The position numbers were made by a program, and so were the translations under genes. The notes beneath the pieces are model-generated. The model did not search any database, was not told the origin of the DNA, and worked only from the letters and a program-made list of their open reading frames with translations. DNA of 64,000 nucleotides, from assembly GCA_964035545.1 (NCBI GenBank), contig OZ037771.1, forward strand, positions 14,259,133 through 14,323,132, written 5' to 3'. This document shows, one piece after another, positions 5,314-54,373 of this stretch. Position 1 is the first letter of the stretch. Each line of letters opens with the position of its first letter. The stretch comes from Bugula neritina (Eukaryota > Animalia > Bryozoa).

Positions 5314-5401
5314 CTGAAATGCATTTGTAAGAGGAAAGCATACGTGAGCATTTACCTTGTGTGTGTAACGTTGTGATGCAATAAGAGGGTATGTTAGGAG
5401 G

Positions 5402-8400
5402 TTATGCTCGAATAATGCGCACAACTTCTCTTTGTACGCTGGTGCTACGAGCCCGGGACCTGCTGGCCAACTGACTACGCTCCGCCGCGTCGGCCCTGCC
5501 TTCTGCTTCTTCCAGTGTCGCCTGCAGTTTTCGGTATTTACCCAACGTGATAGTGGTGACCTCTTCCTACATCACAGAGGAAATGGGAACACTTATAGAG
5601 CTCATTGGTTGCATGGATGGTAAGACTACAAGCTAGCCCAAGGTCAAGGTGTTGCATGTACACTATACTGCGTTTCTATAGCAACTTAGAAATGATGAAT
5701 GAGGAGCTGCACACATAGTTTTCTCATGCTAAGCGAATGGAATGGGGAGGTGATGAGTCAATACAAACATAAGTAAACAATTCATGCATGGAACTAAAGC
5801 TAAGGACGAACAGCAGAGCTAAGGGCATAAAGTGATGATCTAACTTGCTAAACGCAATAATTTAAATTGCCAATCGCTTACATGTATTTAAATATTTATG
5901 CACAATATTTTAATAAATATTTTTTCAATTATAAATTTGCTTATCTCTAATAGTAATTCACACAAACTAAACTCATCGTATGGTAGGTACACTACAATGA
6001 ACTACGAATAGCAAGCTGAGGAATGGGTGCAATGCAAGTAACACTTGGTTACCACGGACACCAAATTGTGATTAAGGAAAAGGTCACCAAGTAGAATTTT
6101 GAGAAGAGACAACGATAGATATGCAGTGACCTCAAGCTCTAAAGTTCAAGGTCATTTAGCAAAAGCTCCACTGGAAGAATGAAAGGCAGCCTCTGTCAGC
6201 GAGCCAACACAATACACTCCTAGCTGCCGAACAAGCTGTACAATTTGCTGTCGAGGTGTTCAAATTGGGTGCACAAGATGTTGTTACAGTGAGAAGTATA
6301 CATTAATAGCAATAGTAAACTAAACACAATAACACTGTAGCAAAAGTATTATAACTCTATTCATTGTCAAACTCTGTTATTGCTCTAGGTTGCCTGGCAG
6401 TTTAGTGTAAAATTAGACAAAACTGTCGTGTTTACTATAGAAAAGAAAAGACAATAGAATTAGTTCAGTCAAATAATATTTTGTAATTATTTTGAATGTT
6501 TCAAAAATTTTCTGCCAAAAACTTACAAAGCTAAACGATTTTTCTTATAGATACTTCATTATACTTTTTCCAATTCAAGAGTTTAGAATGTTATAAACTA
6601 GTTTTTGACATCTATAGACGGCTTTAGACTATTTGACCAATCACCATGTTATTGTTATGGTTGCCATGGAAACAGAATATGGCTACTCACTGCTTCTTCC
6701 ACTTGTCTCTTGTATAGTTTGATCTTCTGGTTGAGAGTTGAAACCTGCTCGTTGAGCTCAATAACTAGTCTTCTGTCCTCCTCAGATGACATTATCAGCT
6801 CCTTCAATTGCCTCTCAAACTTCCTGGCAGCAGCCGATGCCTCTCTATGTCTGCGCTGTTCGGCTTCCAGCTCTGCCTCCAAGTCTCGAATCTGCAAATT
6901 GCAGGACAAGTTTACTATCAAGTGGCAAAATGCAGTTCGAATAACTAAATTTAAAGACTCATCTGTGTTTTTAGTAAAAGGTTTTTATAAACTGAACTCT
7001 ACAATAAGCCAAACTTTAACTGACACTCTGCTGAAGTCAGCTATTAATAATTAGATATCTATGTTTCCGGGTTAAAAAGGGAGCAGCCGTGGGGTTAAAG
7101 CGTTTGCTTAGTAAACACAAAGTCACGGGTTCGGACCCCGGCAAAGAACATTGGTGGTGTTTGGAAGAACATTCAGTCATAATTTCTCATGTGCCCCAAT
7201 TTGAATAAGTCTTTAGCCTAATTCAACAAAAAACTTTTTCTATCAGGGGTTTTCTCGCAGGGATGGTGACTATTAATTAAACTTGCGTGAGTTTCTGAGT
7301 TAGTAGCTTACTCTAGACTGGAGTTTAGCGATGATTCTCTTGCCCTCTCGAGCAGCGAAAGACTCAGCCTCTTCAAGACGAACACTGATCTCTCTGATCT
7401 CCACCTCCAACTGCTTCCTCAAAGTCTCGGCATTTCTGTAGTTATTGTGCTCTAGAGCCAGGTCATCAGCCATGCGCTTGTTCTCATTGGACAGACGATC
7501 AGCTCTATCATTAGCAGCAGCCTATCAAATACAAGCTTAGAATAGTTATATTTGTATTCTTAGTTCTTATTCGATAAATAAGTTTTAATTGATATCAAGC
7601 TGTAAAAATTTCTTCTTGTACAATAAATAGTTTAAAATGTATTTTATCATTCTGTTGGTTTTGTATTAGATCAAAATAGTCATTAGATTAGCCTAAATAC
7701 TTACAAGATTAGCCCTAGCTTCTTCCAGTTCAGCAATCATTGCGGTGTTGTCTCCCTCTAGACGTCTCTTCTCATTGGTCAAAGCGTTGATGTGAATATT
7801 AATCTCCGAAACTCTGCTTGTTGCCTCATCTCTTTCTCCTTCTGCGTTCTTCCTTCCTCTCTCAGCCTAACCAGGAATAACAATAACCTAAGTTATGCTA
7901 TTCAATTTAGTAATGTAAACATTGCTAGTTTCATACACTGACTGACATCTTGATGATATATGCAGTACTATTTCTTTATTTACTGACACAAAACCCATAA
8001 TCAAAATCTCGATATGCTCACACCATACTGAGAATGTATCAATTTCATATGCTGGCATTTTAATGATACATACAATAATAATTTGATATGCTGATGCGTA
8101 CTGACAATAAACTCATACCACCACATTTCTGCAAACACCACGCTGACACCATACTGACACAATATGAAACTATACTAATGATGTACTGGCACCTTACTGA
8201 CACCATACTAACACCTTGCTGACACTATACTGACACCTTGCTGACACCATACTAACACCTTGCTGACACCTTACTGACACTATACTGACACTATGTTGAC
8301 ACCTCTCTTACACGCCTATCTGAAGCCAGACTTACATTTTCCAAAGCAGATCTGACATCTTCAAGTTCTGACATGAGTGCATTTCTTCTCTTCTCGGCGT

Positions 8401-11400
8401 TGGCGAGAGATCCTCTGGTGTCATCCAGTACATGCTCAATATCGATGACTGTAGTCTCCAGCTCCTACACATTAGGAACTAAATATTACCAGAGTTGTCT
8501 TCTCAGCACACTCAGCTCATCACAAGAAAATTAAATTTAACCTTTTAACCTTTATGCAGTTTAATGTGACGAATCAGCCGAAGGTCTATATAGAGTCATT
8601 ACTTAACACACGGGGAGCGACAATAAAAAAGTCCCTTTTATCAAGACATGAGCCCAAAATACTTTGCTTTTTTCTGCTACTCAAACAGGACAGAGCAAAG
8701 ATAGGTGAGGATAACTACAGAATAATATCAACATCCGAAGCAAATTTCCTTTAAAAGATATTTATATTATTTTTCAGTATGTGCTTAAGAAAATTTTTCT
8801 TTTAAAAAGCTTAGTGGCGTTTCCTGAGTACCTTGATTCTAGCCTGAGCTCCCTTTCCAGCTCTCTGGAGGTCAGCGTTGACTCGGTTCAGGTTCTCAAT
8901 CGTGATCTCGTACTCCTTAATCTCGCTGTCGTACTTCTTCTTGAGACGACCGAGTTCTGCCTTGTATCTCGTCTCAATCTCCACGATAGTTCTCTGCAAC
9001 TCCTCGATAGTTCGCTGGTTGTTCCTCCTGCATATTTCATACTTTAGATTAGCCAATTACAGTGTAGTTTATTTCATACTTTAGATTAGCCAATCAAAGA
9101 GCAGCTTTTTTCAAGACACAAGTTCTTTATTAAACAGTCATTACTTTTTTCTGATTTTCGAGGTAGACATCATGTCAGTAAAATACAAACTTTATGATTG
9201 TCATTTATAAAGAGAAGCTCAATAATCATCAAAATTTAGAATATGACAAGGTCGTGAGCAACTCACATCTTACACAAATTTGCACTAGCCTCTAAGAATT
9301 CAGGAAATTTCCAAAGCCACGATCATTACCTGAGGGTTTCAAGCTCATCTTCCTTTTCTCGCAGACGTCTCTCGAGCTCATTCTTGATGTTTCCCAGAGC
9401 GTTGTTAGCGGCAGCGAGACGACTCTCAAGGTCAGCATTGGCATTTTCGGCATCACCCAAAGCAGCGTTAAGGCTGTCACGTTCTCCCTCCAGAGAAATT
9501 CTGATCTGAGTAAGGTCGTTGACGTTTCTATAAGATAGATCAAAGTTAGGTTAGCAGGTAGCATATCAGCCAGAATTACATTGTCAACAAGGAAGTTTTT
9601 GCTTTTTAATACTTTAACTATATTACTTTTGTAAACCTATCAACAGTGCTAAAAAACTTCTATAAATGTGCTTTTGGAGCAATAGAAAATAGCAACAGTC
9701 AATTATCAAACTTATAACTTCTCTACTAACTCAACTCAATCACCTACTAACTCAACTTACTTCTCTACGAACTCAATTCAATCACCTACTAACTCAACTC
9801 ACCTAGTAGCATCTTTGAGTTCTCCTTCTGCTTCTCTCAGTCGCTCACTCAAGTTCTTGTTCTCTCTGGCCAAGCCGTCATTCTTACCATGAAGGTCATC
9901 AACTTGGGATCTCAATCGGCCATTCTAAACCAATTGCATAGGATATGTGTAAACAACAAAGCAAGTCAATAACTACACAATAGTTTAGGTTATTGTGTTC
10001 TGAAATTAAAAAACACTCAACTACAGCTTGGTCAATAAAAAATAATTTTTATTTTGTATATAGGCATTTCGAAAATATCATTTTAATAGTGAATGAAGAT
10101 TACAGATTAAACTTTTAGTGCTCCATAGTTTAAAGCTATATCTTGAGCAGTTGTTTTAGGTAAATGTAACAGAATTGCATAGAATGTACTAGAATGCATA
10201 ACTTGCTCGAGTGTTTCAACTCAGAGACATACATTTTCAGTTAGAGTCCTGATCTCAGTGAGAGAGCTGCTGAGTTGAGATTCAGCATCTCCCAGACGAG
10301 CACCCAAGTCACCATTGGCCTTTTCTATTTCCTTCATTCTGCGTCCCATTTCACCATTAACTCCTGTAAAAACATTCAGCTTGATTACACACACCCAGAA
10401 CTTTGAGTAGTGCAAATAGTGACAGAATTATACTCCGCAAACCGTTCTTAGTGATTGATAACTCGTTTTATAATTTAGATATTTTATGAGGCCTTATTTA
10501 ATTTCCATTTGCTGAGAATTAACTATCTGGTATATTCCTTTTTATTATTATTTTTATTAAACTTTATTTTTGATTGTGTATAGTGAATTATATTTCATAA
10601 TTTTGACTATGGAAATTTTCTATTCATCTACACATTTATGTAACAATAACTGCATAGGTTACAGCTTTCTGTCATAATAAAAAATTGTTTGAACTCATCT
10701 ACTACAGGAGTTGTCTTATTATTTTTTGAAGCTATTTAAATATTGCTAGAATTACCTAATTGCATTAATTGCCTATTTAACATGTTACTAGAGTTGTGTT
10801 CCCTTTTTATCAGGCTTTACTTGCGAGTAAGGCGTCCAACATACTACCATTGCTACTTACCACTCAAGTTGTCTATCTCAATAGTCAGTTCCTTGATTTC
10901 AGTTGTCAACTTGTCCTTGGACTTCTGGAGAGTACCAACTTTACCATTGGCAGCGTCTAACATGTTAGTCAGCTCGATGATTCGCAGGTTCAATTTCTTT
11001 CTGTAAGGCACAAAAAATCCCTTTTTAAATGTTATGTATACATTTCTGAAAAATATTAGGCGTTAGTATTAGATGTTTATGATTGTACAGCAGTTTTCAT
11101 GAGAAGACAATTACAACATATGCATAAAATAATTTAGACCCTACTGGGATTTGAACCCGAGATCTCCTGTAAGCAGGCAAGCTACCATTACACCACAGGG
11201 CCACTGGGTAAACTCAACACTACACACAAGACACATCGGTAATCATGGAACAAAAGACTAAAACAACCAGTCTACATTGAACAATCTGATTTCCTTTCAC
11301 TGACCTAATTTCTTCACATTCGTCATTCTTGGCAGCAAGTTCACGATCAAATTTGCCTCTGAGTGACTGAAGGTCGCCTTCGAGTCTCGCTGCCTTAGCC

Positions 11401-14400
11401 TTGGCGTTGGCAGCGTCCTCAGCCTCTTCGTCACATCGCATAGCAAGAGCGTCGTAATCAGCTTGCAGGTTGGCAAGCATCGTTTGCAAATTAGCTCTTT
11501 GCTGCACACCACAAACATTTCAAATTCAAAATGATGAAACTTAGTTATCAGGCAAAAGTTTTGTGTTTAAAACATTACTTTAAATAATAAACATATAATA
11601 ATTATATATTGCTGTTAAATTATTAAATTAAAAAGAAGTTAAACAAATGTTCAAGGCAATGACTATTGTTAGTAAACAAAGGCATGACTGTCATAGTTGC
11701 AGACGTATAATAAACAAATTATCATTGTGATAAAATGGTTGCTTACTTTAGACTCATCATCTGCAACACGTCTCATATCTTCCAACTGTGTGGTAAGAGT
11801 AATCTTCAGCTTGCTCAAGTTACCAGAACTTGCTTCCAGGTCTTGGAGAGCCTTTTGCAGTTCAAAGTTCTCTTGGGTCAATCTAGATTTGTGGGCATTG
11901 GAGTCATTCAGTTGTCTGGTCAGATCGTCAACCTGTGCAGAATTTCAGAAATATACACGCCTGCAACTGCTTTTAAATAAAGATACGGTAATTATTTTTA
12001 ATTGAAAACACTTTTAAATATAATTTTAAGTTTACAATCTGCCTGTAAAAATTTCAAGGTAGATGCGGTAATGGAGAAATTAAGAAAAGCCAGTGTTCTA
12101 GATTGAAAATGTAGTGAAAAAAGTTATGTTCTAGCAAAATTTTACACCCGCACCCCAAATCTATAAAAAAATTAATAAAGAACGTAGGCTCGCTCAATTT
12201 CTCCACTACTCATGCAAAGCTCAAATTCAATGTACATCAATAAGTAATAAGCTTATCAATTTTGTAAGAATACAAATTTATAAAATCAAAGTACTAAGTA
12301 GGTGATGACGACCGGCATAAAATACTACTTCCTGTACCTGAGCTCTGAGTCTAGCAAGTTGAGCCTCCAGACCTTCAGCTCGAGAGTGGTCAGCCAAGGC
12401 ATTCTGTCGGACATTCTCGAGTTCAGAAGTGACCACGTCTATCTCAATAGTCAGGTTCTGTCTTTCCTTCTCTGACCTGCAGTATGGAGACACGTTGACT
12501 AATATCTGACACTTCTTTTAGCTCAACACTGACTAGTATCTGACACTTATTGTAGCTCAACACTGACTAGTATCTGACACTTATTGTAGTTTAATACTGA
12601 CTAATACCTGACACTTTTTGTAGCTCAACACTGACTAGTATCTGACACTTATTGTAGCTCAATACTGACTAATACCTGACACTTATTGTAGTTCAATACT
12701 GACTAATACCTGACACTTATTGTGGCTCAACACTGACTAATATCTGACACTTTTTGTAGTTCAACACTGACTAATATCTGACACTTATTGTAGCTCAACA
12801 CTGACTAATACCTAATATGATAACTTATTCCTATAATTAGCTGACACATACACAAAATTTTACTAGCTACTAACTCACCTACTGTCTGACACATTATGTG
12901 ACTCATTTCTATAATTAGCTGACACATACACAGCATATTACTAGCTACTCACTTGTTCTTCTGCTTGGTGAGCATATCTATCTGGTCAGACATCTCAGCC
13001 ACCGTCTGCTGGTGTCTACGCCTCATTGTCTCGCTCTCCATCTCCAATGCATTCTGGGCATTCTCTAAATCTTTTCTCATCTTTGTAATCTCGAACTCTC
13101 TCTTGCGGTTTATCTCAACCTGTCAATTGATCGCTCACTGTGAAATACTTTATGTTTTATCTTATTAATTTTTTGATATTTCACTGCAATTTTGAATCTA
13201 ATTGTTTAACATCTAAACCTGCAAAAGGTAAATGAATTAATTGTAAATTTATAAGCTTAGCATATGCTATGTTTAATTGGTTTCTCATAATTATATTAAG
13301 CAACTTTTTGCAAATGATAAAAAGGACTAGTTAGTAAAATTACAAAAAATAACCTTTATACCAAGGTGGCCCGAATGCATTGTTATTTTATTTGCAATTG
13401 TAAAGTCCGTATTTATCCCTCAGAAGTATTTTTCGTGTGCAGCAAAATAATAAACAGCTCCTAATTGCTAATAAAGCTGGGCATTCAAATCACCTCCACA
13501 GTGAATTATGATATACTTTATATTTACAGTAAAGGTTAGCCTATAAACCTACAGTCTAGTATATCTATACATACTAGATATGGAACATTCTAGAAAGTTC
13601 AAGTATGCAGGTGCAGGTCATTGTGAATAGAGTAATCAGTTTATTATCAGCCAAGAGGTATGCAATGAAGTCTTGCAACAATTGCTTATGCAATTCCTAT
13701 AGTTGATAGAAAGAGGTCTATTAGGCTAATAGCCTTAGTAACTATAACTTAATGAAAAACACAGGTACAGGCCTTAGACTACAATGAGCTGCATAATTAA
13801 ATAATAATGCTATTTTTATTTATCATTTAGCTTATCATCTGCGCTAATTGAGTAGAGCTTCTAGACTGTTCTATACTTTCCGGAAGAATAATTACATTCC
13901 AATAGTTAACTCAATCCAATAAAGCCTGAAAATTCCTTTATTCCTGGTATAGCTAAGACAATAGCTTTCACACTGTTTACTTAAATTTAATATTAAGTAA
14001 GATTACATGGCAGAATACGTATGTAATACTTTTGTTTTTATAATGGTATCATTGTTTTACTGTATTTATATTTTTTATTCCGGAAAGGAAACTTTCTTAT
14101 AGTCATTTTTAAAATTGAAGATGTACTCAAATTTTACCAGTAGGATTTTGTAGGGCTTCTAGGTTAGCATTAGTTTTCAGAATAAAATGTGCGAAGTGAG
14201 GGTCGTTCACAAAACCTCCCCATCTAAAACTGACCTGGTGTGATGATAGACCACCAGCTTCATCTAGCCTGTCATTCAAAGAGTCTACCATCAGTTGCAG
14301 TTCTGTAGATTGTCTCTCAAACTAAAGAATATTCAGCATATAGTACAAATATTATATTCTATTTCCCTAGTAAACTAAGGGCAAATATTAATTCTAAATA

Positions 14401-17400
14401 AATAAAAAAAATACACAAGTAGTGAATCAATATTTAATGTTTGATATATGTAGCCCAGCACTTGGATAGCAATGATAATGTTTTGAAGTTAGAATATTGC
14501 TAGATTAAAAGGTTTATTTGATTGACAATATGAAAATTAAAATTATTTTCAATAAAAAGCTATAGTTGTGAATGTTCTACAAATGTACAATGCTGTAAAG
14601 TAACTGTAACGTATAGTATAATACAACAGAAGAAATTAAAGTAACATTATATAATATTCCATTCTGCACAGCACAGTATATAAAAGTAAAAAATGAAAAA
14701 TATATAATTATGTTATAGTCAATGTATAAAATATAGTTATATGTTATGTTTTATAGTTAGTGTATACAATAAAGTTATAGTATATAATATTGTCATAATA
14801 TATATGATGTTGCTATAGTATGTATAATATAGCTAGAATATATGTTATAGTTATAATATATAATAAAATCATAGCATATGACACACACCTTCAATCTCAT
14901 ATCTCTCTCGGCATCCAACATATCTTCTAGCTCTCGAAGACGAGCCTAGAAAATAACAACAAAGACTCGTTTATTAAGAAATGGCATCCATTTTAATTGA
15001 TTTCATCATCCATTTATTTTACTATTTGTATTTATTTGAGTTAAGTTAGTGTGGGTTCTATCACATTTCAATAACTGTTAGAGGGTCTACTGTGGCCTTC
15101 CCAACTGTATATATAATTAGGCTATAATAAGACATAATGACCAAGGTGTGTTTCTACTTTGAGATAACTAAGTACTATAGCAAGGTAGGCATGCTGCATG
15201 TATGTAAAAAGGCGGCTTAGCGGAGTGTGGACTATTAGCAAATATAATAATAAAACAGGCCAGAGTAATTATTCCATATAAGGAAGTCAGCGGTAACATG
15301 ATACCCTTGTAATTACACTCCTGTATACGCCTTTGTATCCCATCAATTAGCCTGCTTATAGCTGCTCAAATAAAGTACACAGATTATATGAACTGACAGG
15401 TTCTCTGTATGCCCTAATAACATTAACAAATAATAATATATTAACTTTTAAAACCAGTTTTTTCATATTTATTTGCTATTTGATGCTTTTTATCTCATGT
15501 TTGTGGTATTTAAGTAAACTTTTAGTGAATCAAACATATGGCCACTTTACAAATAATAATTATTATAGGATAAAAAAGAGTATATAGTTATATATACTAT
15601 ATTATAATATGTCATACTATAGTATAACATATTATAATATAATATTATTATTATTGTATAATTGTAACATTATTATGATGTATTGCATTATATAATATAT
15701 TGCAATATTTAATTAAAATAATCATATTTCTATTAATTTATTTAAAGCTATCAACTGTCAACAATGTTCCAGATTATTCACTAATTTGACAGACAATAAA
15801 TGGACAACTAAATCCATCCAACTAACATTAAATGCATCCAACTATTTGGATGCAACAAGGAATTGTATAAGGCTCAGGGTAGGTTAGCAATTCATTCAAG
15901 CAAAAGTTGGTTAGTGTTGAAATATGAATAAAGCCAGTGTAATGGCCATTGCTTAGCCTATTACTAGATATAATGTTAGTTGTTAGTGTATTACAAATGA
16001 TAATCAGCATGCAGGAGTCTACTCAACAAGAACCTCTAAGTAGCTGACTCTGTAATCATGTGTATAACTTACTGAAGAGGTAAAGGTATTGCTCAATAGT
16101 CAGTACATTCTGTTAATATTAGCATTAAAGTTAGGCTCTGTTTTACAGGCGAGCCCATTACACAACTATTTGTTGATGTAATGCATTCCATTAACTCAAA
16201 AAGCAAGATGGCTGAGTTCTGGAAACTTGAGTATTTATGCAATTGTTTCATGTTTTCAAAAACACTTTGGTAAATTTCTTTTTGTGCCAAGACCAAAAGC
16301 GAAACATACAGATGGTAAAAAATACAAATTTACTTTCTTCAGAAATCTGAAATTTGCATAGAGTGAAACATGATCATTATTTTAGCTCTTTATTTTGTAA
16401 GGCTCAAAAAAGAAATTGATTCAGAGTTCCAGCTCTAAATTTCAGTAACATTAACAGTAAACTTCAACACTTTAATTCTAACTGGCAGGGGAATAAAGTT
16501 AGTTATTAAAAGCTAAAACAAACAGCATTTGGCAGCCACAAGCAGGTGCTTTAAGAATATGTGACATAATGACATGTGTCAACAAGTGCTCATCATATGA
16601 TTCAAGGTTAGTACATTATTCAGCAGGTCGATGCAAGTTCTCAAAAAGCTATGTGTCACCAGGTAACAATGACACTATAGCAACATAGTCATGGAAGGCA
16701 GGTTGGAAAAGAGCTCAAATGATGTCATAGCGCACATAGATAGAGAGAAATAACAAGTGACACCAATGAGTGAGTGGTTGACAGTTGCTGCAACAACTGA
16801 TGACAGGTACAAGCAGGTTGAAAGCACGCAGCACAGATAGAGAGCTGCTCGTGTACCTCCATCCTATTGCTGGTGGTGGGCGACATTCCTCGGTATACTT
16901 GGTAGTGTTTGTTAATTCTGGTGACAGTTTGAGTATCTCCACCAAAATCACTCATAGTCTGAGGTTAGAAATGTTTACAGCAAAAGTTTTTATATTTGAA
17001 TTGAAGCCAAAAGAGAAGTTAGTAATTGAAATTCTTGCTTTTGGTCAACAAAATTTTTATAGCAAAATACTTTTTAAATAATGAAATAAAATTGATATTT
17101 TAAAATCCAATGATTGTATATTAAAAGGCTTGTTTAAGAAACAATGTGAAAGTTTAGTCAGAAAAATAACATTAGCATGTGTGTTAGAAAGTCAAGCAAA
17201 TATTTAGTTATATGTCTATAAAGAAAATATTAAGCACACTTCTACAAAATTTATAGGATCTTTTTTATAGCACTTCTAAGGCACACAGTATCTAAATTTA
17301 TTCTATGCAATATCTCAAAATAACTTCGAAAAAGCAAGCATGAAAAATTATAAGCCATGAAATAATCACAATTAGGCTAAAAACTTACCTCCATTCTGTT

Positions 17401-17508
17401 GCTGGTGGTAGGGGACGTTCCACGGTACACCTGATATGTCTTGTTAACACGGGTGACGGTTGTGTTGCCATCATTTTCAGTAGATATGATTGACCTCTGG
17501 ATATCCAT
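5402..17508 (-). CDS. Prm: Paramyosin, main isoform, 17 coding exons, 868 aa
   Basis: Exons (minus): 17508-17389, 14945-14889, 14321-14235, 13119-12953, 12476-12338, 11932-11747, 11501-11305, 11000-10861, 10363-10233, 9924-9803, 9527-9330, 9027-8832, 8464-8336, 7866-7705, 7521-7312, 6891-6691, 5566-5402. All introns are GT-AG and phases are consistent. Head [31 protein letters not shown], continuous myosin-tail coiled coil ([40 protein letters not shown]), tail [19 protein letters not shown]. No motor domain; length typical of paramyosin. Confidence 0.95.
7078..7200 (+). mobile_element. Degenerate tRNA-derived SINE fragment
   Basis: A-box-like GTGGGGTTAAAGCG and B-box GGTTCGGACCCC at tRNA spacing, followed by a GGTGGTGTTTGGAAGAACATTCAGTCATAA body. 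Intronic. Confidence 0.5.
8140..8305. repeat. About 12-bp tandem repeat (ACTGACACCATA/ACTGACACCTTG)
   Basis: Direct inspection; paramyosin intron, close to the exon 13 donor. Confidence 0.8.
11137..11223 (-). repeat. tRNA-like element (pseudo-tRNA or SINE head) with conserved 5' leader
   Basis: Minus strand reads TAGTGTTGAGTTTACCCAGT-GGCCCTGTGGTGTAATGGTAGC...CTCGGGTTCAAATCCCAGTAGGGTC: A box, B box and acceptor stem present, anticodon arm shortened. Related copies at about 25304-25370 and 25505-25568. Confidence 0.6.
12496..12815. repeat. 34-bp minisatellite, about 9 copies
   Basis: Unit TGACTAATATCTGACACTTATTGTAGCTCAACAC; next to the paramyosin exon 5 acceptor. Confidence 0.9.
15274..15283. 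promoter_or_regulatory. Intronic CArG box in paramyosin intron 1
   Basis: CCATATAAGG, a perfect CC(A/T)6GG match. Confidence 0.4.
16857..16958 (-). CDS. Prm: Paramyosin alternative head exon 1b
   Basis: ATG at 16955 gives [33 protein letters not shown], a near copy of exon 1a. Phase-0 donor GAG|GTAC; AG at 16960-16959, 3 nt before the ATG. Confidence 0.75.
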
Positions 17509-17724
17509 GCTGAGTTAGAGAGAGCTGACTGTGTGAGTCTACCAAACCTTTAGAGCCAAGTGAGAGAGAGCAGTAGATGAGAAGGTAGTGTCGAAAGGGC
17601 TAACTGCAGCGCACTGTAACAGTTTTTCTCTGTCCACTCATATTGTAGCTTAGAAGCTATAAAATACCTCCTGACATCATAGTATTTACGGCAGTAGAAA
17701 GATTTCGATTGGTTGAAACGCCAG

Positions 17725-17734: not shown

Positions 17735-19857
17735 AACAGCTCATGGCAATAGCAGGAATGCAATTTATAGCAATGCTAGGGCCATGATATCACGGATAAT
17801 AAGGTTAACTAATTTGTTAAATATTTCATGAATACCTAGTAGAAGATTCTAATTGGTTACACAACCAGTGTAATGTTCATAGTAACCACATTATTTATAG
17901 AAGGTCTGAGTAAATAGATGTAATATTTTCGAAATATCATTGCTGCAATTATTGCATATAGCATCTGGAAAAATCTTGATGCATAAAATATTAGGAAATA
18001 AGCAGTAAAGCTAGCAAAAAGCTAACAAGAAAATAAGAAAATTATTTTTTTCTGTACTAAAGTAGGCTTATGATACATACAGTGTTGGTCATATTAAAGT
18101 ACCCAGAATAATTTCATGGATAGAAAACAATTATTTTCAAGATGCTTTGATGTTGAAGCCAGCTTTCTCACGCATAAGTAAACCATTGCAACCTGCTGTT
18201 GAAGGATGCTTTTTACTATCGGCAGCAACTTAATACATAAAAAGGCAGCATATGAAAGAGTTAGTCAGCAAGCTTCAGCTTCCTGTAATTAGGCAGCACT
18301 GAGGTGATGCTGTCTGGGCAGGTATTTATTACTTATTAATTAGAGTAATGAGTAGCAAAACACAAGAAACTTGGAAAGTAGATCAGCTGTAACAGCATTC
18401 TTACAGTGTGCCTGCAGTAATAAGCACATGAATACTTCTTACAGACACAATAACATTATTACAGTTAATTCATATAGTTGGGATGGAATAGCTGTAGGAA
18501 AAAAGTAATACAGCAGCAAATTTGTTTATGGACTAGAAAAAACAGACACCGTTTTAGGTTTATTGTGTCAAAATCCAAACTTAAATGAACAATTAAAGGC
18601 TTAGACTTTGAAAAAAAATGTCATATCAAATAATTGCAAAAATATATTAATAATATAAAATCACAAAATATTTGTTTTGCTATATAATGATTGTGGCATT
18701 CTAGATTACACGTTTATATGTATTATGAGAATAGGTACATTGCAAATATAAAACATGATACAAAGTTTTCTAACTTTTGATATTTTATGGCAGTTGTTGT
18801 AAAATAAGCCCAACTTACTAGGTTCAGGCCGGACTCTCAAATCCTCAGTTGTTTACATTTAGCTCACAGCTATCACAAAGCTATGTATGTACTACAAGCT
18901 ATGGTGTCATAACTCCATTCAACAGTCTTTCCGAGATTGACTAACAACTCTTTAATTCAAACATGCATGCAATTTCTTCACACTTGAAATAAAATAATAG
19001 ACTTTTCGCTAATGAATATACAATGCAATAATATAAATATTATTGCAGTGAAAATAGGAAACGAAGTACAAGCAGTTGCCCTCTCTTTGCTACTAATGAT
19101 CCCAGCTATTTAAGGTTTCTTAAAAAGTCACTAATCATTTCCTTCAAATTTAAAAAAGATAAATTGAAGCAAAGCTTTCAACATAATGACAAAGATTATT
19201 TAACTATTGTTCTATGAAAACTTCACACCTATTAAAATGTGAGAGTTTTATATTATGTATAACTACCAGCAACTATACTTTTTGTAGAGAAAGTGGAGCA
19301 CATCTTGTTTAGTACTGTAGCTATACTAAACAAATTAAAGATATTTTAAAATAAATTTATTAGTTGTAGCATTGAGGTTATATAATTTCAATACACTGGG
19401 AGAATCACAACTAATTTCAGAAAAAATACAATAAATTTATTTATTTAATAGTATTGAAAAGATCTAATTTATAAATGAATACATTTAAAATAGTAAAAAG
19501 GTAGAGGTAAATATTTCAGAAAAGTAGCTATACAAGAGAAGTTGAAATTGTTTGTAGAAATACTGCTTAAAATATTTAAGCTAATGCTGAGATCAGTCAA
19601 GTATTCTATAAACTTGATTTATATTTACACATGATTATATATTTAGCTATAATAAGTTATAAATATGTACACATAATCATATTATGTAGATATATTAAAT
19701 AAAATATATGTAAACATTGTTTATTGGTAAAAGAGGTTTTCCCAACTTAGCCCATAGTTTTTTCTGCTATCTTCCAAGTACAGGGGCTCACTCATACCAC
19801 CCCAACTTTTGCTATGTAGGAAATGACTAAAAATTGAACTTATAAAATGGTGCTTTT

Positions 19858-22029
19858 TTATTGGGCAATATTCTGTATCAAGAGGTCGTTGGATTTATTT
19901 AGCCTACTGATGTCTTCTTTAATATCTCTCCTCTGCCTCAGTAGTTCTGTTCTATCCTGTAAAATGTGTTAAAGATACCAATGACTACCAAGTATCTCAA
20001 TATTAAGCTGGCAACCATGCAAAAAGTGACAGGTGCTTGCATGTGCTTGCAGGTGATTGCGTGCTAAAAGCACCCATCAATACTTTTCAGGATAATAAAA
20101 TCATATTAAATGCATGCTGTTTATTCACAGTTAATTGTTACATTTAAATACAAAAGCTAACAAATTAATACTAACCCTCATAGCATCCTGATATTCCTTT
20201 ATAAGTTTGATTGGACCTAAATTTGATTGGTTGTCCCTAAAAATAAAGATATACAACTATACATGTGACTAACACAGTAACATGTTCTAAGTAAGTGTAT
20301 GATGATGTAACAACTATTTTGATTGGATAGGGCTGGGATACTACTAAATAGTAACACATGTCAGGCCATCTATCTTACTAATAACTTTATTTCATATTAT
20401 ATTTTATGTTGTTACAGTCTAAATAAATCTTGCAGCTTGTGCATTAGTGGTATAAAACTAGCTGGTTGTGCTAGTTATATTGAACAGGGTTCTCCCTAGA
20501 TGATAGAGAGGGGAGTTCACATATTTTTATACTTCAAATATATCAGGCAGAAAGTAAATTCAATATACAATTAAGAAATTAACTCTCTCATATATAATAA
20601 CCCTATAATAGCATTTGTTAGCATTGCAGTAAATAAGTCACACTGTTACTACTCTCCAACCCCCCCCCCAACTACTCACTCCCCCCCCCCCTTAGCAAAA
20701 CATTGGCTCTTCTTCACGCAATAAGTTCAGCTACTGAGTTCATTTTAGTCTTACGGGATTTTCCAAAACTTAGCTAAATTAAAGTCACAGGTGGCTAGTG
20801 CTTGCTAATTGTTGTTGAGCCTGGTTAGTTTTCCATCTACAGAATTGTCTTCCCAGGAAAACTTGGGAGAAAGTTGTTAAAACAGAAGATACAACATTTA
20901 CATTACATTATAGTTTATAACATACCTTTGACCACAGATAGGCTGCTTGTTTCCATCTGGTATGTTCTCACCATTCTCCTTCTTATGTTCTACAACACAA
21001 ATACTATATATTATGTAAATCCATTATATACAAAATGTGAGAAGTGCAATATGTAATAACTGAAAGTAATTTACTTTTCATATGAAGTTTGTCCTCACTG
21101 GTACATTTCAACGACTTAGCAATGTTGGTGTTAGGTTGGAGGTAGCAAAGAGACTTCCTGTTGGTGAAATCTACAATTTCATGGAACCTAAAAGAACAGA
21201 GAAAACAGTGTATCTCATACGTCTGTATTCGTGTTCTGTTTATGTCACTAAGCGTCAAGGTACGCAAATCTTTATCTATCTTATCAATGCCCTTTAATTT
21301 TCATCTGTCATAAACTAAATAAATATTAACTAGAAAAGACAACAGTGTATAAAATTTAAGCACTGTATTAGATTATGTTTTACCAACATATCATATCCAA
21401 CAGAGTATAATAATATAGTGAGTGCTCCCTCTATATCCCACAGTTCAATTTCTCACAAAATTTGGTAGGTCACAAGAACGGCTTGGACCCCATTTTGTGG
21501 TAGAGGAACAAAATGCCAGAATTTAACGGATCCATGAGTTAAATCTGGTACTCTACTATGTATATAACGCATTAAAGTTTGAGACTCTTAGCTCAGTGAG
21601 ATACGGAGAGAGCACTGCAGTTAGCTGTCAATTTCATAGTATTTAACCAAGTCTATTTTTCTTACTTAGGACGAGAGATTCTTCGTCTTCTAGGACGTCT
21701 GCTAGCGAGCTGACTGTGAATATTAGCAGGAACCAAACCTAAACCCAACATGAAGTCCATCATCTCCTGAGTCTCCTCATCAGGGGGTTGCTGCCGAGCT
21801 GTCACTTGTCTCACGGCAGCAGCATGTGACTACAACACATCAGTTAGTTCTGAATACTACGAGTACATATTGATAATACTAACATTATATACTCATAATA
21901 CTGGCAAAATTAAAGCACCAGTCATAATTTTATTCATAAAGCAAAAATACGTAATATAAAATGGTGAGAAAGAGTGCTTTAGAAATATAGGATAGAATAG
22001 TAACTCACTGAAGATATAGTAGAATACAT
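19858..22029 (-). CDS. PHF21A-like paralog C, PHD-less, predicted 173 aa
   Basis: Exons 22029-22009, 21829-21666, 21187-21075, 20989-20926, 20236-20176, 19956-19858; GT-AG, phases consistent, no stops. The exons match those of the full-length gene in order (FMLGLGLV motif, FHEIVDFTNRK, DNQSNLG, DRTELLRQRRDIKEDISRLN coil). Confidence 0.6.
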
Positions 22030-25000
22030 GTTTGTGTCTGATGATCAAAGCAACTGAGAGGTTTACTGGATGAAGGTTTAGTTACACAGGCAACTGTTTA
22101 TCTCCTGTTTTCTGAATTTGTGACACCTAAAAAAATTAATGCTATGTTGAAGCACTGGAAACTCTCCCACTTATGTACTAACAAAATTTCCCGCCACTTC
22201 CGGTGTCCGAGACTGGGAGTTCTATTGGCCGAAGTCGGAAGGATCTGTCCGAAATCGAACAGGCCCTTCTAAAGTCGCGACTCCGGGCTCCGAACTCAGT
22301 CGAATTTCAGTTCACATAACTCATCAAAGATTATTCACAAAAAAACGTGGTGGGGGAACATAACTCAACAAAAACTATTACGTATTTTAAACACAAAAAT
22401 AAAAAAGGCAATTTACAATCACTATGCTATTTAATTACTACGCTAAGAGCTTAGCTATAATTACAACATTTAACAGCATTTAGAAAGTTACGCCAAGTCA
22501 ATTATAATATAATTACTAGAGCGTTAAAATCCATTACAATAGCTTTTAGTAGCAATTTATTGGGAGTCAAGATTTTAATGAATGTGCCCTAGCTCTTTTA
22601 AAAATATACAATAACACCATTGATTTACTATATATTATCTTGCGATATGGTAGGCCTATCTTGTAAAATCTTCAAATCAACTTTTCAAAATTGAAAATTA
22701 AAAATACTCATTTTGAAACTGATAATTTTTCAAATATGCTCAAATCGATTGTTTAAAGTTTAAACAAATACATTTGGTTCATGTTACGGCTTTGATTGAG
22801 TAAAGTTATTACCGACAAAAAAATTTTTTAGATACAAATTTGAGTTTACTTTTAGTTTTAGAAGTTATTTTAGTAACTTGCAATTTGCAAATCGATGAAG
22901 CTTTAAATAATATATTGTCTTGGTTTTTGGCAAAGTAGGCACAACGTGATAAAAAAGCAATATATCTCTGAAGTAAATGCTAAATTTTGCTTCAGTCACA
23001 GTTTATAGTAATTAAACATAATTAAAATCATTATGCTTTCAGTTGAATCGTGAATAGGAAATGGATGAAACTTAGTTTTTGACTCGTCAATTAAAAGCAA
23101 TAACTAACTCTAAACCTCATGTAATGGTAGGTCATGAGTATGTTTAAAACTTGTTACCCACATTTTTACTTAGCTATACTATCTTCTCACAAATCTAAAA
23201 ACGTTTTTCAAAACTTGCTAGTTAAGGACTAATTAAAGAACTTTGCTGGCTTCATGTAAATGTTTAAAATTGAAATTTTTAGTCATTCAAAATCGTAAAA
23301 ACTAGTTATACTAAAAACTAGGCAGATTGATTATAATAATCACTGCTGTTTAATATTTCTAAAGCTATTAGCAGAACCACTAACTGATTTTAACAGCTCA
23401 ATAAATGTGATTAGCAATAACTAAAAGCTATAGGGTTTTAGTTATATTTAAATTCATGAAGCTAGTGAGACTCAAAAAGAGACTGCGATGACTGATTTTA
23501 GATGTATATAAATTATAATGTTTTCATAGCAATTGGTAGTGCTGTTTGGTGTCATTGAACAAGCTTCAACTCTATTACCATAAAAGCTGTCATTATTTCA
23601 CTCCATTATTGAGTATCCAATGAATTTGATTGAACTAAACAGACTATATTCTTTAGTTCGAATAATAGAGCTACAGGTTAATTCAAATTTATCAGTTGAC
23701 TCAACCGAGTAGCTAAAATTGATTTCAGCCATATTTGATAGTTTTTCTTCTCAGTTTGATCAACCATTGACATTACTTAGTCATAATTAGTTTAACTCTA
23801 AAAATCCCAAATTCTGTTCGACATATATTTGCATTTCTTATAATTTTTGAGTTTCGAATTATTACTCATTGATTGGAATTCATTTTACTTGCAATAAAAA
23901 ACTAAATATAATAACTTGAATCCATGAGACGAGATTGTATAACAGTTCCATTGCTTTCTTCAACAAAGATTTTGTCACAGTAATGATAGAGCCATTAAAT
24001 TCCGGAATAATTTTTGAAATAACATTACATCAAACAACTAAATTCAAGAAAATTTAAATAAATCTTGTTCAGACAATAGTATCTTGCTAACATTAAAAGA
24101 AAATCAGAACTTTTGATCCATTAGGCATGCAGCCACTATTAATTTATTCTAATTTGAAATTGCATAAACTATAATTTAGTTGACTAAAGCAAAGCTTTAA
24201 TGACAATCAAGCAATTTTAATGAGGCTAATTTTATTTGTATTAGGCCTACTGATATTTTTGGACATTTCTAGCTTGTGTGAAGATAAAATTTAGACTTAT
24301 TGTCAGTCAGTAGTACCAAATTTGTTGATTGGGTAAATGCTTTTATTTCATTCAGCTCAGAATTGTTTACTCAATTTACTCAAATTTAAGCTCTGGATAT
24401 GAGGTTAGCTCACAGATTTCCTTAAAGTTAAATTATTCTTTAATTTGTTTAATCATATTATTATTAGTTAACATAAAGTTACTAATTCAAGATGAGTGAG
24501 TCTAGAAATGTGTAAAAGTTCTACTCTACCTTAGATATATGTTAGCTGTTGAGAAGATTTTGTATCAGATCAGAGTGCCAGCCACGTCTGTATAGTTCAA
24601 TTGTTTGGTATGGTTACTGGACAAGATGGCGTCAACAGAGTATTTATACTAAGAACTGTTTATAGAAAATTTGACCAATCAAAATTATTCATCAATTTCA
24701 ATTCACCATAGAAAACAATCGTAGTAGTTAGCTGAGTGACGTAATTAGACACACTTGAATGATCATGGTTTTGCTGTGTTTGGTTGATAAACTATCTATT
24801 TAAACACTTTTAAATTAATTATTTATTGGAATTGAAATCATCATTAACTGTGGAGAGTTTCAAATCTCAAATAAATAAAGTAAAATCATTGAACATTCTA
24901 AATTACTAATATAGTAATACGATTGAAAATATTAGTAACTGGACCAATTTATATGGATGATATTATATATAGTATAGAAACAACAAAAATTTCTGATTAA

Positions 25001-26799: not shown

Positions 26800-28875
26800 T
26801 TATGCTTGTTGACAGGTACCTGTGACTGAGCTCTGTAATGGCATTAAAATATCTATACCTAAAATCAATCTCTGCAAGACAATTGCGTTCTGGAGCCGTA
26901 CTGAAGTGCTGTGCTGCGCACAGGTAAAACAAGTGCCATAATTACAAATCCTAAATCTGGAGTTAGTGCAGAGGTCTTGGTGTAGGACTCCTTCATAATC
27001 CAACTGGCATAGGCAACGTAGATGATATGCTAGTGTGCAGTAATCGCACAAGATCAGTCTACCTGCACTTGCACAGGTGGCACAGAGGTCCTGGTAGAGG
27101 ACCCCTTCGTCATCTGACAGAGACACCTCTGACTTGGTCTTTCTCTGCTCTGAAACAATGTAACAGTTGTATGAATGAAGTAGTGGAAACATGCTTTTCA
27201 CTTTTCACATCTTTTATAAAACGGATTTTATTTTAAAACTCCTTTTTTCTAGGAGGCCAACTAGTAGACTTCTTGCTAGGTTCTACCAGCTGGTCATGCA
27301 GGAGTCGCACATAATGAGCTGCTCCTGCACATATTGTACAGAAATCACAGTGTAGCATCTCTTTTGTCATTTGACAGGGTATAATCTGCCCTGGAATATA
27401 TAATAGTCATGTGAAAGTGGTAATGGTAAAAGTTTCAATTGCTGCTTTTAAACTTTTCAAAGAGCAGATTTTATCTATAAAATTGAATGGTTTTTTTTTT
27501 CTGGTAGGCCTACTAATTCAGGTTTGACCGTAAGCAATTTCTATGTAAAACAAATTCCTCTTTACCTTGGATATAGGTTAGTTGTAATTTGGTTCTGTAT
27601 CAGATCAGGGTGCTAGCCACGTCTGTATAGTTCACTTGTGTGGTATGGTTATTTCCTTTTTTTGGTAGGCCTACTTTCAGGTTTGACCGTAAGCAATTTC
27701 TATGTAAAACAAATTTGTAGACAAGAATTCACTTATATTAGTAGAAAGTCGCAAGGTTTATGAAGTTTATGGCTTTTCTGTACAATTAAAAGGTGTTTTG
27801 TCAGTTAATACATTATGCATGAAAAGTAAATATTTAAATGTTAATCTATGTAATGCTATATTATTAATAGTATAAAAAAGTTATACAATTTATCATATGC
27901 ATGTAAATAGAATACTCCTACATTTGATGCGGGTACTTAAAAAGACAATAAATATATATAGTCAGTAATTAAAGTAAAAATCAAATACATCTAATACAAC
28001 ATATTAATAAAATACTTTTTATACTTAATATGTTTTTAGATATGCATGCAATAAATATTTATGAACTATTTATATTTTAGTACAAATAGTAAATCTGATG
28101 TACATTTATATATGATAAATAATTATCAATAAATGTTTCTAAAAGATGTAACTTTTATAGATCCAACTCTTTGTGTTTTGGCGAACCTTCACTCCCTGTA
28201 TTTGATGAACTGTCGCTGTAAATAAATATATTCATGCAAGAATTACTTTTATTGCTTTTGTTATGAGGCGAATTGCCAACAGTCAGTCAAGTGTAGGTGC
28301 TGCTACTATACTACTACCACCACTACAACCACCACCACCACTACCACTAGGTGTAGTCAAGAATTTATTTATGTTAGTGAAAATTTGCAAGCTTTATAAA
28401 ATTGAAATGACTTTTCTGTACAATGAAATAGGTGTTTTGTCAATTAAGATGTTGTGCATGAAGAGTAAATATTTAAATGTTAATCTAGGTAACGTATTAA
28501 TTGTATATGGTACAATTTACGACTTAAGTAATTGAATTTTTATTGTTATATTGTGACATGCTATGCAAGAGATACAAACACACCACATGAGAAGACCATT
28601 CAACTAACCTATGGAGATATTCTGTTGCCACATATACCTTCCTGCACTCTGAGCAGGCATCACAGGCAGCTCAGAAATTGCACACTGTGAATGCTGCCAG
28701 CATTGCCAGGGATGAATCAATGTGTGCAGTTAGGCATCATGTGATGAATGAAGGACATTTGCTCTTCATAAGAGGATTGTCTTTATTTGTACCTCGTAAC
28801 GATTTAGCAGTGCTGCTGATAAGAAGATGGTAGCAAGTAGACTACCTGTTTGTAAATTATATGATTTCGTGGAAC
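26800..28875 (-). pseudogene. Decayed PHF21A-like PHD module fragments
   Basis: Exon remnant FHEII* at 28875; half-PHD (LHCDFCTICAG..QLIMCDSC) at about 27300-27390; truncated PHD LYQDLCATCASAGRLILCDYCTLAYHLRCL at 27149-27010, followed by a restarted EGVLHQDLC. Lost donor near 27240. Confidence 0.7.
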
Positions 28876-30001: not shown

Positions 30002-31279
30002 TCACCTGGAGACACATACCGGGCACCTCCACTGGCCCTCTGGCACCCTGCGCAGGCGCAGGCAACGCAGATGATATGCTAGGGTGCAGAAATCGCACAA
30101 GAGCAGTCTACCTGCGCCTGCACAGGTAGCACAGAAGTCTTGGTGGAGGTCACCTTCGTCGTCTGATAGAATTTTGTTCTTTCTCTGCTCTGAAACAATG
30201 CAATAGTCATATGAATGAAGTAGTGGGAAAATGTTTATCACTTTTTTAAATCTTTTATGAAACAGATTTTATAAAAAAGCTTACTTTTTTTGGGAGGTGC
30301 ACTTTTAGAATTTGTCTTCGTTGATTCTACAAGCTGGTCATCTCTACAACAAGTATTCATATTTACTATATTCCATGTGTCTGTAAAACTACTTTTAATA
30401 ATCTTTATAATCATTAACCAGAATGGTTTTGTATCTACTTTTCCCCATGCAACTAATAGTCTCTGCAAAATCTCTTGACATTAAGAACTGAGAAAAAATT
30501 GTTATCTGATGCATGCATGTTAAAAGTTTGTCATAAACATGTATAATATGTAATAAATAGAATTTTTTATAAAATATTAAGCCAAAACTATATGTACTTA
30601 ATAGGTCACACTCATTTTGCTCAAAGCATATACTCCCAGGATGTTGTTGGCGAGTTGGGAATTTGAATAAATTGAAGCTTTAAAAATGTATACTCACTGT
30701 GACTCATAAGTTATACGTCTTTTTGGTTGTCTTTTTGGACGTCTGCTAGCAAGTTGACTGTGAATATTAGCAGGAACCAAACCTAAACCCAACATGAAGT
30801 CCACCATCTCCTGAGTCTCCTCATCAGGGGGTTGCTGCCGAGCTGTCAGTCGTCTCACGGCAGCAGCGTGTGACTACAACAATTCTGAGAATCAGTTTGA
30901 CAACAAAAAGCAGTTTTTGTATTTAGTAAAAGTCATGGAGATTACAATAATGATCTAATAATCTACTGCTCAGGGGAAACAACTACCAAATGCATCATGT
31001 AATGGAAATGGAGATTCAACTGACAAATAAATTATCCAATGAACAAAGAGTTGTTGAATAGCAAGCTCATTACTAATAGGCTAAACTTTGAAGGAACTGG
31101 CAGTTAAAAATTTTTTTAGCAAATTGAGATGTAAAAACATAGTTGTTTTTTAAATTAATTCAACTTTAATGTTTAAAATAATTTAACTCACTGAAAATCA
31201 TTCAATATCTCTACCCAAGCTCTATTGTTTAATAAACAGAGTAAAAGAGCTAACTTACTGAAGATACACTGGAGTACAT
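30002..31279 (-). CDS. PHF21A-like paralog B, FMLGLGLV motif plus intact PHD finger, about 150 aa (3' end uncertain)
   Basis: Exons 31279-31259, 30873-30698, 30343-30285, 30189-30006 are in frame. PHD HQDFCATC..CDFC..H..C..WRCPVC keeps all 8 zinc ligands. Stop at 30002-30004 if unspliced, or FHEII* if spliced to 28875. Confidence 0.55.
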
Positions 31280-34685: not shown

Positions 34686-37600
34686 TCATTTACTTAAACG
34701 CTTCAACTGTTTGACAATGTTTATCATATTGTTGAGGAGAGACGAGGCTTTGGCAGCGTCGCTGACTAGCACTTCCTTTTCCCGTATCATCTTAGTGGCT
34801 AAGTTGTTGATCCTGTCGAGCTCCTCTTGAATTTCGGCACTTTTATTAATCAACTCTGTATTTCTCTATAAAACACACCAAAATGTAATGTATATATATG
34901 TATATGAAAATTATAGAAATTACATTATTTTCTTTGAATTACGGAGTTGTCCCCTTTCTCAAAGAAAGATTGCATACAGTTACAAATAAAAACACTCGTA
35001 TTACCTAAAGAACACACCCTTATTAAAACAATAAAACTTGCATTAATCAACCAAGTGACATAAAGACCACCACAAGCTGAAAACAATGTCTAAATATGAA
35101 TTATATATTATACTAATTCATAACATTATATAACATTTAGGGCATTAAACTTTTTAATAACCTTTAAATTATTGCTAATTGTGGCTTTTCATGTTGCACT
35201 GTTTTACAAATAAAGATAGGAATATTATTAATTATGTTGCATTCAGTATATGAAACCTGTGTCAAGGGCAGATAACCTCTACCTAGTTGTCAGAGAACCA
35301 TTATTATAAGCAGCAGCTTGTCAGCATATTATGTAGTCAAGTAAAGCGTGTTATGAATATTTTCTTGAAGGTGTAGGAGGAATAATATTCCCTCCAGAGC
35401 TAAAGACTGCATACATTAGTGAGTGAGCTAATAGAAGACAGCAACAGTTGCCTGGTGTCACCTCACAAACCAGCATTTTCTTGCTGCCATGAAACCAACC
35501 TGTTGATATTCAACTTTCTGCCTGTGAATATTCAACCTGCTGTCAGTGTATATTTAACCTGCTGTTAGTGTATATTCAACCTGCTGTTAGTGTATATTCA
35601 ACTTTCTGCCAGTGTATATTTAACCTGCTGTTAGTGTATATTCAACCTGCTGTTAGTGTATATTTAACCTGCTGTTAGTGTATATTCAACCTGCTGTTAG
35701 TGTATATTCAACCTGCTGTTAGTGTATATTTAACCTGCTGTCAGTGTATATTTAACCTGCTGCCTGTGTATATTCAACTTTCTGCCTGAGTATATTCAAC
35801 CTGCTGCCTGTGTATATTTAACCTGCTGTTAGTGTATATTTAACCTGCTGTTAGTGTATATTTAACCTGCTGTTAGTGTATATTTAACCTGCTGTTAGTG
35901 TATATTTAACCTGCTGTTAGTGTATATTTAACCTGCTGCTGCTGTTAGAGGAAGACACAACTAACTAACCTGCAACAACTGTTGATGTTCATCCTCCTTC
36001 AGGGACTTCTGTTGAACAAACTGATGAACTGTCCCGATGACTGATTGCTTGTCACTGAATGATAGAAAGACAAACTCGAATAAAGCACCAAATTGCCTGA
36101 TAAGTATAGCTGAATATATATGAAAGGTATATATAGTAAGTATAACTGAATGTATATGAAAGGTTTATATAGTAAGTATAGCTGAATATATATGAAAGGT
36201 TTATATAGTAAGTATAGCTGAATATATATGAAAGGTTTATATAGTAAGTATAGCTGAATATATATGAAAGGTTTATATAGTAAGTATAGCTGAATATATA
36301 TGAAAGGTTTATATAGTAAGTATAGCTGAATATATATGAAAGGTTTATAGAGTAAATATAACTGAATATATATGAAAGGTTTATATAGTAAGAGTTACCT
36401 CAAGGCAGGTGCGATGTGAACAGTGGTGACTGGAGCAGCTGCACTTCCCGCTGCCGGTACGACTGAGGAAGATGCCGAGGAAGGAGGAGCTGTAGTAGAG
36501 GTCGTGCTCTTAAAAGAGGAAGTGGCGACTGCTAGACTAGTGGGCGTGGCCTTCCTCTTCCTGGACGGAGACTTGGACAGTTCGACGCACTTGGGGCAGC
36601 TCCACTTGCCGTCTGGCACGGCGCGCAGACGCAGACAGTTGAGGTGGTAGACGAGGACGCAGGTGTCGCACATCACGAGCTCACCCGCCCCTTCGCACAC
36701 AGCGCAGAGATCCTCGTGAAGGGCTCCTTCGTCATCCGAGAGAGGCACCTTGCCACCTCTAGTCTTCTCCCTTCTGCATCCTGAAACCACACAAAAGAGG
36801 GATTTAATAGAGCCGCCTTTACAGAGGGACACAAACCACCAGGTGACTGAATGGAACTCACTTTTTATAGGAGGCACCGGGGAGGAGCGAGTGGACCGTC
36901 TGGGTCTCTTACTCGGGTTGGTGAGAGACCGGAGAAAGTCGTTAGGTTTTCTGTTGTTGAAATCTATCATCTCATCAAATCTGTAAGAAAAGTGAAGGCA
37001 TGCCACAAAACCCTCCTTGTATACACACGTCGGTCGTTTCACTGTATAGGGAACACAACTCTTAACGCACTTAGAAAGCAGATAGTCTTTACAGTGTCAT
37101 ATAACATCACTAAAATACACTGTACACAACGTGTATTAACTACACAAAAGCCGTTAGTATCTGAAACACGAGTAGTGAACCACTTTATTGTGCATTAAAG
37201 TAAGCTATTTCTCTTCACTCATTTCGCCAAACATGGATTCGGGTTTACCTAGCGCGTGCGAACTTGCGTCTTTCAGCCCGTCTGCTAGCAAGTTGACTGT
37301 GAATATTAGCAGGAACCAAACCTAAACCCAACATGAAGTCCATCATCTCCTGAGTCTCCTCATCAGGGGGTTGCTGCCGAGCTGTCAGTCGTCTCACGGC
37401 AGCAGCGTGTGACTACAACAATTCTGAACATTAGTTAATTCTAAATACTACATATTGATAATACTAACACTACATACTCATAATACTAACAATACATACT
37501 AATAATACTAACACTATACACTAATAATACTAACACTATATACTAATTATACTAACACTATATACTCATAATACTAACACTATTTACTCATAATACTTGC

Positions 37601-54351: not shown

Positions 54352-54373
54352 GTACCAATATTGTTGAGGCGAC

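Follow-up and report, generated by a model that had tools for sequence, protein, structure and literature searches.

A short copy of PHF21A without its PHD finger, here called copy C, lies on the minus strand at 19858–22029 of the 64,000-nucleotide stretch of Bugula neritina DNA that we analysed (the window; contig OZ037771.1 of assembly GCA_964035545.1). Comparison with a second assembly, GCA_010799875.2, indicates that copy C is very probably a protein-coding gene under constraint, and it probably makes a real protein. On the evidence of its homologous and collinear exons it is a PHF21 paralog by descent, yet it does not qualify as an H3K4me0 reader, since the C4-H-C3 PHD finger of such readers is absent. 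Copy C has thus lost the effector domain, and the motif and coil that it keeps may represent an interaction region.

Gene structure of copy C and loss of the PHD finger

Copy C consists of six exons of 21, 164, 113, 64, 61 and 99 nt, which add up to 522 nt and encode 173 codons followed by a stop. All introns are of the GT-AG type, an internal stop is absent from each exon, and the exon end phases (0, 2, 1, 2, 0; junction codons K, K and R) match the final six exons of the parent gene (copy A), which measure 164, 119, 382, 85 and 180 nt after the first. The sequence-only reading had joined the same six small exons in phase into 173 aa, and this structure holds, as does the presence in copy C of the FMLGLGLV motif and of the C-terminal coil peptides that it quoted. 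The N-terminal 510 residues of the parent are missing. Joint skipping of exons 3 and 4 would remove 177 nt and leave the frame open. Compared exon by exon with the parent, exons 2, 3 and 6 are significantly alike and exon 5 marginally so, and exon 4 corresponds by position and phase only.

The untranslated part of the first coding exon (5' leader, 22030–22126, minus strand like all the copy C features below) derives from the parent coding exon at 38166–37997 and aligns both to it and to a second short paralog, copy B. It opens at an acceptor-like AG, with AG|GTG present in both lineages and in copy B, which implies a further upstream exon or start site. The coding part of exon 1 (22009–22029) has seven codons and yields the same peptide in the second assembly; its ATG, common to copy B, stands where the parent has a CTC (Leu) codon. 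Exon 2 (21666–21829, 164 nt) encodes the helical FMLGLGLV motif and an Arg-rich tail that is likely a nuclear signal by prediction. Its first 137 nt were gene-converted from the parent and its last 27 nt are specific to copy C. In a single-sequence fold, the short helix carrying FMLGLGLV is predicted at pLDDT 74–80 and is amphipathic; the mean pLDDT of such folds was 51 and 56, which is low confidence.

Exon 3 (21075–21187, 113 nt) is the homologue of the 119-nt parent exon (shuffle p = 2e-4), exon 5 (20176–20236, 61 nt) is a shortened start of the C-terminal helix, and exon 6 (19858–19956, 99 nt; shuffle p ~ 1e-3 against the parent exon) encodes the coil and the stop. By heptad count, copy C retains the C-terminal zipper or coiled coil of a PHF21A-type reader, with four zipper-like heptads in exon 6 versus about eight in the parent exon. 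Six of nine a/d positions are hydrophobic in both lineages and the core a/d residues are unchanged between them. In the predicted fold of the parent itself, the region matching this coil is a long helix with pLDDT about 90. A candidate poly(A) signal, AATAAA, lies at approximately 19720–19730, ~136 nt after the stop, and a second one ~415 nt downstream of the stop; both are kept in the second assembly. The AATAAA overlapping the stop, highlighted in the sequence-only reading, does exist in the window, but it is lost in the second assembly, where the stop is TAG.

Exon 4 (20926–20989, 64 nt) sits where the PHD exon would be, in the same phase, and has no zinc-finger pattern (one Cys, one His). 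None of the copy C exons tested gave a Pfam hit, whereas the parent and copy B match PF00628 (PHD), and no PHD remnant was found in the copy C introns. The PHD exon measures 382 nt in the parent, 184 nt in copy B and 64 nt in copy C, with differences (198 and 120) that are both multiples of three. A PHD exon cut down to 64 nt had been read earlier from this sequence together with a surviving trace, IPDGNKQPIC; the reduced exon stands and the trace does not, as its similarity to the parent PHD exon is not significant (shuffle p = 0.17; p = 0.02 against copy B). The second-lineage allele reads VSGGNKQPIC (p = 0.54) and aligns best with the pre-PHD linker GGKVPL. Because exon 4 aligns equally well to this linker, a new donor ahead of the finger explains the loss as well as an internal deletion does. 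For a stop-containing segment at 20836–20785, whose inclusion would have spoken against the spliced frame, the acceptor AG is gone in the second assembly, and the segment is therefore unlikely to be a regular exon.

Constraint, gene conversion and expression

We compared copy C in the window with its ortholog in GCA_010799875.2 (locus L017). The introns differ by 16.6% substitutions over 1490 aligned sites and by 19 indels. The six exons have identical lengths and keep all 10 splice sites, the ATG and the frame, with no indel in 522 nt. The coding sequences differ by 22 synonymous and 25 nonsynonymous changes (dS 0.235, dN 0.066, dN/dS 0.28, Fisher p = 5e-5); with transition bias, dN/dS becomes 0.35–0.39, and the confidence interval for the whole gene lies below 1. 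For exons 3–6 alone, dN/dS is 0.35 (p = 0.004), with an interval that reaches 1 under transition bias. In neutral simulations at the intron rate, with an indel rate taken from the alignments that may be somewhat high, 0 of 20,000 runs kept frame, start and splice sites, and exons 3–6 stayed intact in a fraction of 2.5e-4. The earlier suggestion that selection keeps the PHD-less frame is borne out by this comparison between lineages.

Constraint varies along the gene. It is very strong on exon 2 and clear on exon 3, but on exons 4–6 by themselves it is weak. Exon 2 carries six synonymous changes and a single, conservative nonsynonymous one in 123 sites (p = 2e-8 against introns), and the protein sequence of its C-specific Arg-rich tail is invariant between lineages. 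Exon 3 has dN 0.065 and dS 0.23. Exon 5 is changing fast, with seven nonsynonymous and no synonymous differences. Against introns, exons 4–5 give p = 0.12 and exon 6 p = 0.34. Neighbouring sequences do decay on this time scale, because copy B has been disrupted in the second assembly and a dead exon resembling copy C exon 3 (28763–28875, minus strand), used as neutral control and carrying a premature stop common to both lineages, shows pN 0.135 and pS 0.129. Copy C has none of the marks of a pseudogene, having no disabling mutation in either lineage and a dN/dS that is not near 1. A genomic DNA run with two haplotypes, compared over 4,801 nt, had, among the differences listed, 18 substitutions and two indels inside copy C, all intronic; a further 129 substitutions and 17 indels fall outside that listing, and exonic differences may be among them. 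The two B. neritina assemblies differ by ~17% in introns and by a dS of 0.15–0.23 (window against loci L017 and L021), a divergence that fits two cryptic species rather than two alleles.

Part of the likeness between copy C and the parent is due to gene conversion. Over the initial 137 nt of exon 2 the two have a dS of 0.14, against values near 1.0 or at saturation in exons 3 and 6 (p = 7e-5), which means that the motif exon is nearly identical to the parent because it was copied over. The conversion tract also covers the upstream intron, where copy C retains a remnant (21830–21902) of the 22-bp minisatellite found in the parent intron; in B as well as in C the tract stops at codon 45. Such exon-limited conversion is seen among all three paralogs (21666–21902, 30729–30897 and 37267–37487), with the same 3' boundary at codon 45 and the minisatellite adjoining. 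Retention of the motif relative to the parent, noted in the sequence-only reading, is weakened as an argument for long-term selection by this overwriting. The conversion probably dates from about the time when the two lineages split, and both C alleles carry two amino-acid changes absent from the parent. We found no exon variants common to A and C within one lineage only; the low dN of exon 2 is therefore not a product of conversion after the split, and the counts given above for this exon indicate that selection on it since the split remains despite the conversion.

These patterns bear on the possibility that copy C is a real gene that has taken up a new job apart from competition with its parent, for example as a small basic nuclear protein of the germ line or larva, and that its motif is present because conversion copies it. 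The weak likeness of exons 3–6 to the parent at saturated synonymous sites points in this direction, as do the faster evolution of copy C relative to A (dN/dS 0.28 versus 0.12, p = 0.05), the exclusively nonsynonymous changes of exon 5 and the invariant Arg-rich tail. However, no part of copy C has been under stronger constraint since the split than the converted motif, and the coil keeps the parent's heptad core. We consider a new job rather unlikely.

Protein searches that started from exon 2 or from the NCBI model turned up no RNA-derived copy C protein; these searches returned matches from B. neritina only, and their blanks say little, as they also missed the known PHF21A of other animals. 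Two metagenome scans with exon 2 gave no match. A parent RNA contig (SRR4125604) runs unbroken through 65 nt identical to copy C. With 31-base words, a well-expressed copy C would tend to break this contig, so that its transcripts were probably low or absent there, a weak hint of low expression in that one sample. The locus was called hidden in the sequence-only reading, which is partly true, as NCBI has a partial model in the other assembly, the wrongly ended 'hypothetical protein' KAF6031029.1 (EB796_010658), which combines exons 1, 2 and 5 with an unrelated last exon and omits exons 3, 4 and 6.

Copy C could also be a dying duplicate or an unexpressed relic, having lost its function recently and keeping a conserved-looking motif exon through conversion. 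That no RNA evidence supports it, that its sister copies are dead or broken and that exons 4–6 are weakly constrained would agree with such a fate. Yet the gene is intact in two lineages 17% apart in introns, its dN/dS is well below 1, and the lack of lineage-specific sharing of exon 2 variants between A and C means that the low dN does not stem from post-split conversion. A relic thus appears quite unlikely.

Just upstream of copy C, at 22150–22330, lies a dispersed ~180-nt repeat with 29 hits at 71–87% identity. Two promoter-like elements near 22200, CCGGAAGT and GCGGGAAA, were rejected as candidates: they fall inside this repeat, are mutated in the other lineage and are also set apart there by a 1.37-kb insertion, which is located at 3505–4877 of L017, immediately before the acceptor of the first exon. 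Similar-looking GC-rich elements occur upstream of the parent (about 43600–43660) and of copy B (about 33380).

The tandem PHF21 cluster

PHF21-like copies in this genome are confined to one cluster, which contains the full parent, the short copy B that keeps a PHD, dead fragments and copy C. The last six exons of the parent (34686–38166, minus strand) include an intact C4-H-C3 PHD at about 36580–36715 and have a dN/dS of 0.12; the gene reaches upstream beyond 41100. Its product is annotated by NCBI as 'PHF21A' (KAF6031031.1, 830 aa), PHF21A/B-like clusters of the ESM Atlas score 0.88–0.93, and its splice junctions are backed by the spliced RNA contig from SRR4125604. The 81-nt intron 3 of the parent (36781–36861) is in frame and stop-free in both lineages, as seen in protein P0002 and a 215-aa ORF; if retained, it would lengthen the product by 27 residues ahead of the PHD. 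A parent exon at 38660–39360 contains a 30-nt Ser/Thr/Ala tandem repeat with unequal copy number between assemblies. Directly downstream of copy C, a paramyosin-like gene (Myosin_tail_1, about 5100–17700) holds the same place in both assemblies. An LTR element of BEL/Pao-like appearance occupies 53901–59927; its two 300-nt repeats are identical, and it carries a single 1674-aa ORF.

Copy B (30006–31279, minus strand; 19686–20423 of L021) has the converted exon 2, a 59-nt exon 3 and an intact 184-nt PHD exon with dN/dS about 0.3, and lacks the coil exons; reading through its last donor leads to a stop within 1–4 codons. In the second assembly, a 30-nt duplication and a ~530-nt deletion have destroyed its exons 2 and 3. 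Since B and C share the ATG at the parent Leu codon and a leader derived from the remainder of the exon with that codon, they stem from one partial duplicate of the PHF21A 3' half; bases at the end of exon 2 are likewise shared. The dead exon at 28763–28875 may be the last exon of copy B. A degenerate B-like fragment lies at 27003–27300 (minus strand) and comprises exon 3 and half a PHD exon.

The complementary content of B and C allows two further readings, both of which we consider improbable. One is that they are alternative front ends of a single unit, the PHD exon of B being spliced to the coil exons of C to give a mini-PHF21A with PHD, and C's own promoter giving the PHD-less form. Copy B has no coil of its own, its PHD exon, with dN/dS about 0.3, ends in a conserved phase-2 donor (the phase at which C exons 3 and 5 begin), and fusion transcripts are common among truncated duplicates (PMC6169893). 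However, between the two copies there are a closer phase-2 acceptor (28875) and also AATAAA signals, B exons 2–3 are destroyed in the second assembly where C is intact, and C exons 1–4 are constrained in their own right. The other is a division of labour in which B kept the reader and C the coil, the two jointly replacing one function of the parent in some tissue. Their complementary losses from a common ancestor, marked by the shared ATG and exon 2 end, would suit this idea, but the parent is intact and strongly constrained, and one lineage has a broken B alongside an intact C.

Proposed function and relation to known systems

The reading that we put forward, to which we give slightly less than an even chance, is that the product of copy C enters a PHF21A-type complex as a reader-less damper of the parent; granted that copy C is coding and constrained, the damper mechanism comes close to an even call. 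Copy C goes back to a partial tandem duplicate covering the 3' half of PHF21A: a new ATG arose inside a parent exon, the PHD was lost in frame, the coil became shorter, and the motif exon was later refreshed from the parent by conversion. The 173-aa product would enter the nucleus through its Arg-rich patch, and its parent-like helix and four-heptad zipper would bind the partners of the parent (LSD1-CoREST-HDAC-HMG20) or the parent itself. A linker would stand in place of the PHD, leaving these complexes with no product-reading anchor; lacking the H3K4me0 reader, they would be less well retained on demethylated chromatin, and copy C would act as a stage- or tissue-restricted damper. The exon most like the parent is also the most constrained, which would fit continued binding of the parent's partners.

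In mammals, PHF21A reads the LSD1 product H3K4me0 and favours recruitment of LSD1 (PMC11864812), and a PHF21A isoform with weakened chromatin binding still assembles, yielding a hypomorphic complex (PMC11864812; bioRxiv 2023.10.20.563357). PHF21A-like proteins co-purify with Lsd1 in Nematostella (PMC9400249), so that the complex is old enough to apply to B. neritina. In this genome, quick searches did not identify LSD1 or CoREST; SWIRM matches were of the SMARCC and ADA2 types plus one unassigned, and an ELM2 search gave no match. We found neither literature mapping LSD1/CoREST binding to the FMLGLGLV motif or the coil nor a structure for this region of PHF21A. According to work of Iwase from 2004, the complex-binding region reportedly includes the PHD, which copy C does not have.

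A more specific version, possible in our view and still doubtful, is that copy C encodes a reader-less decoy subunit of LSD1-CoREST whose docking exon stays close to that of the parent through repeated conversion ending at a fixed boundary, the rest being left to diverge. If so, the FMxxLGLV helix and the zipper would be the minimal complex-docking module of PHF21A, a human neurodevelopmental disease gene. Should copy C join the complex, it would be a natural deletion experiment naming a small part of PHF21A sufficient for docking, and duplication would have given an invertebrate a damper of H3K4 demethylase retention, for which mammals use a neuronal microexon. If it does not join, it would still be a well-supported, mis-annotated lineage-specific gene accompanied by clear exon-limited conversion in a birth-and-death cluster.

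We found no description of a PHD-less PHF21A paralog in the literature, nor any treatment of PHF21 together with bryozoa, and the entry for the same locus in the other assembly (KAF6031029.1) assigns a function neither by model nor by name. An ESM Atlas cluster of 72 members, mostly arthropod and sharing no Pfam family, matches the parent with a score of 0.91 (rank 4); it may consist of PHD-less PHF21 relatives and represent a parallel case.

Among known systems, the closest by descent are PHF21A/BHC80 and PHF21B, the H3K4me0 readers of LSD1-CoREST; copy C goes back to the last six exons of the local PHF21A gene and has kept their phases, the helical motif exon and a C-terminal zipper. It differs from PHF21A/BHC80 by the missing PHD and N-terminal half, a coil of half the length, a size of 173 versus about 830 aa and a new start codon. 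The GRP AT-hook core of mammalian PHF21A is absent both from the copy C exon translations and from parent exons 2–4. Copy C may work like truncated antagonist paralogs and PHD-less isoforms, a class whose membership calls for expression and inhibition. The functional model is PHF21A-n, the hypomorphic neuronal microexon isoform, which joins the complex despite weakened chromatin engagement (PMC11864812); PHF21A-n arises by splicing and retains the PHD, whereas copy C is a separate gene from which the PHD was deleted. A PHD-less variant of a histone reader is known in ING3 delta-ex11, the effects of which mimic knockdown (PMC8392754), but this belongs to another family, derives from an H3K4me3 reader and is a splice variant in cancer cells, not a fixed paralog. 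SRGAP2C and CHRFAM7A (PMC6169893) are young, nearly identical to their parents and demonstrated antagonists, whereas copy C is old, with saturated dS, has lost an internal domain, is patched by conversion and would be an antagonist by inference. Like copy C on our reading, these partial duplicates keep the interaction part and inhibit their ancestor, and CHRFAM7A is also 5'-truncated, as copy C is.
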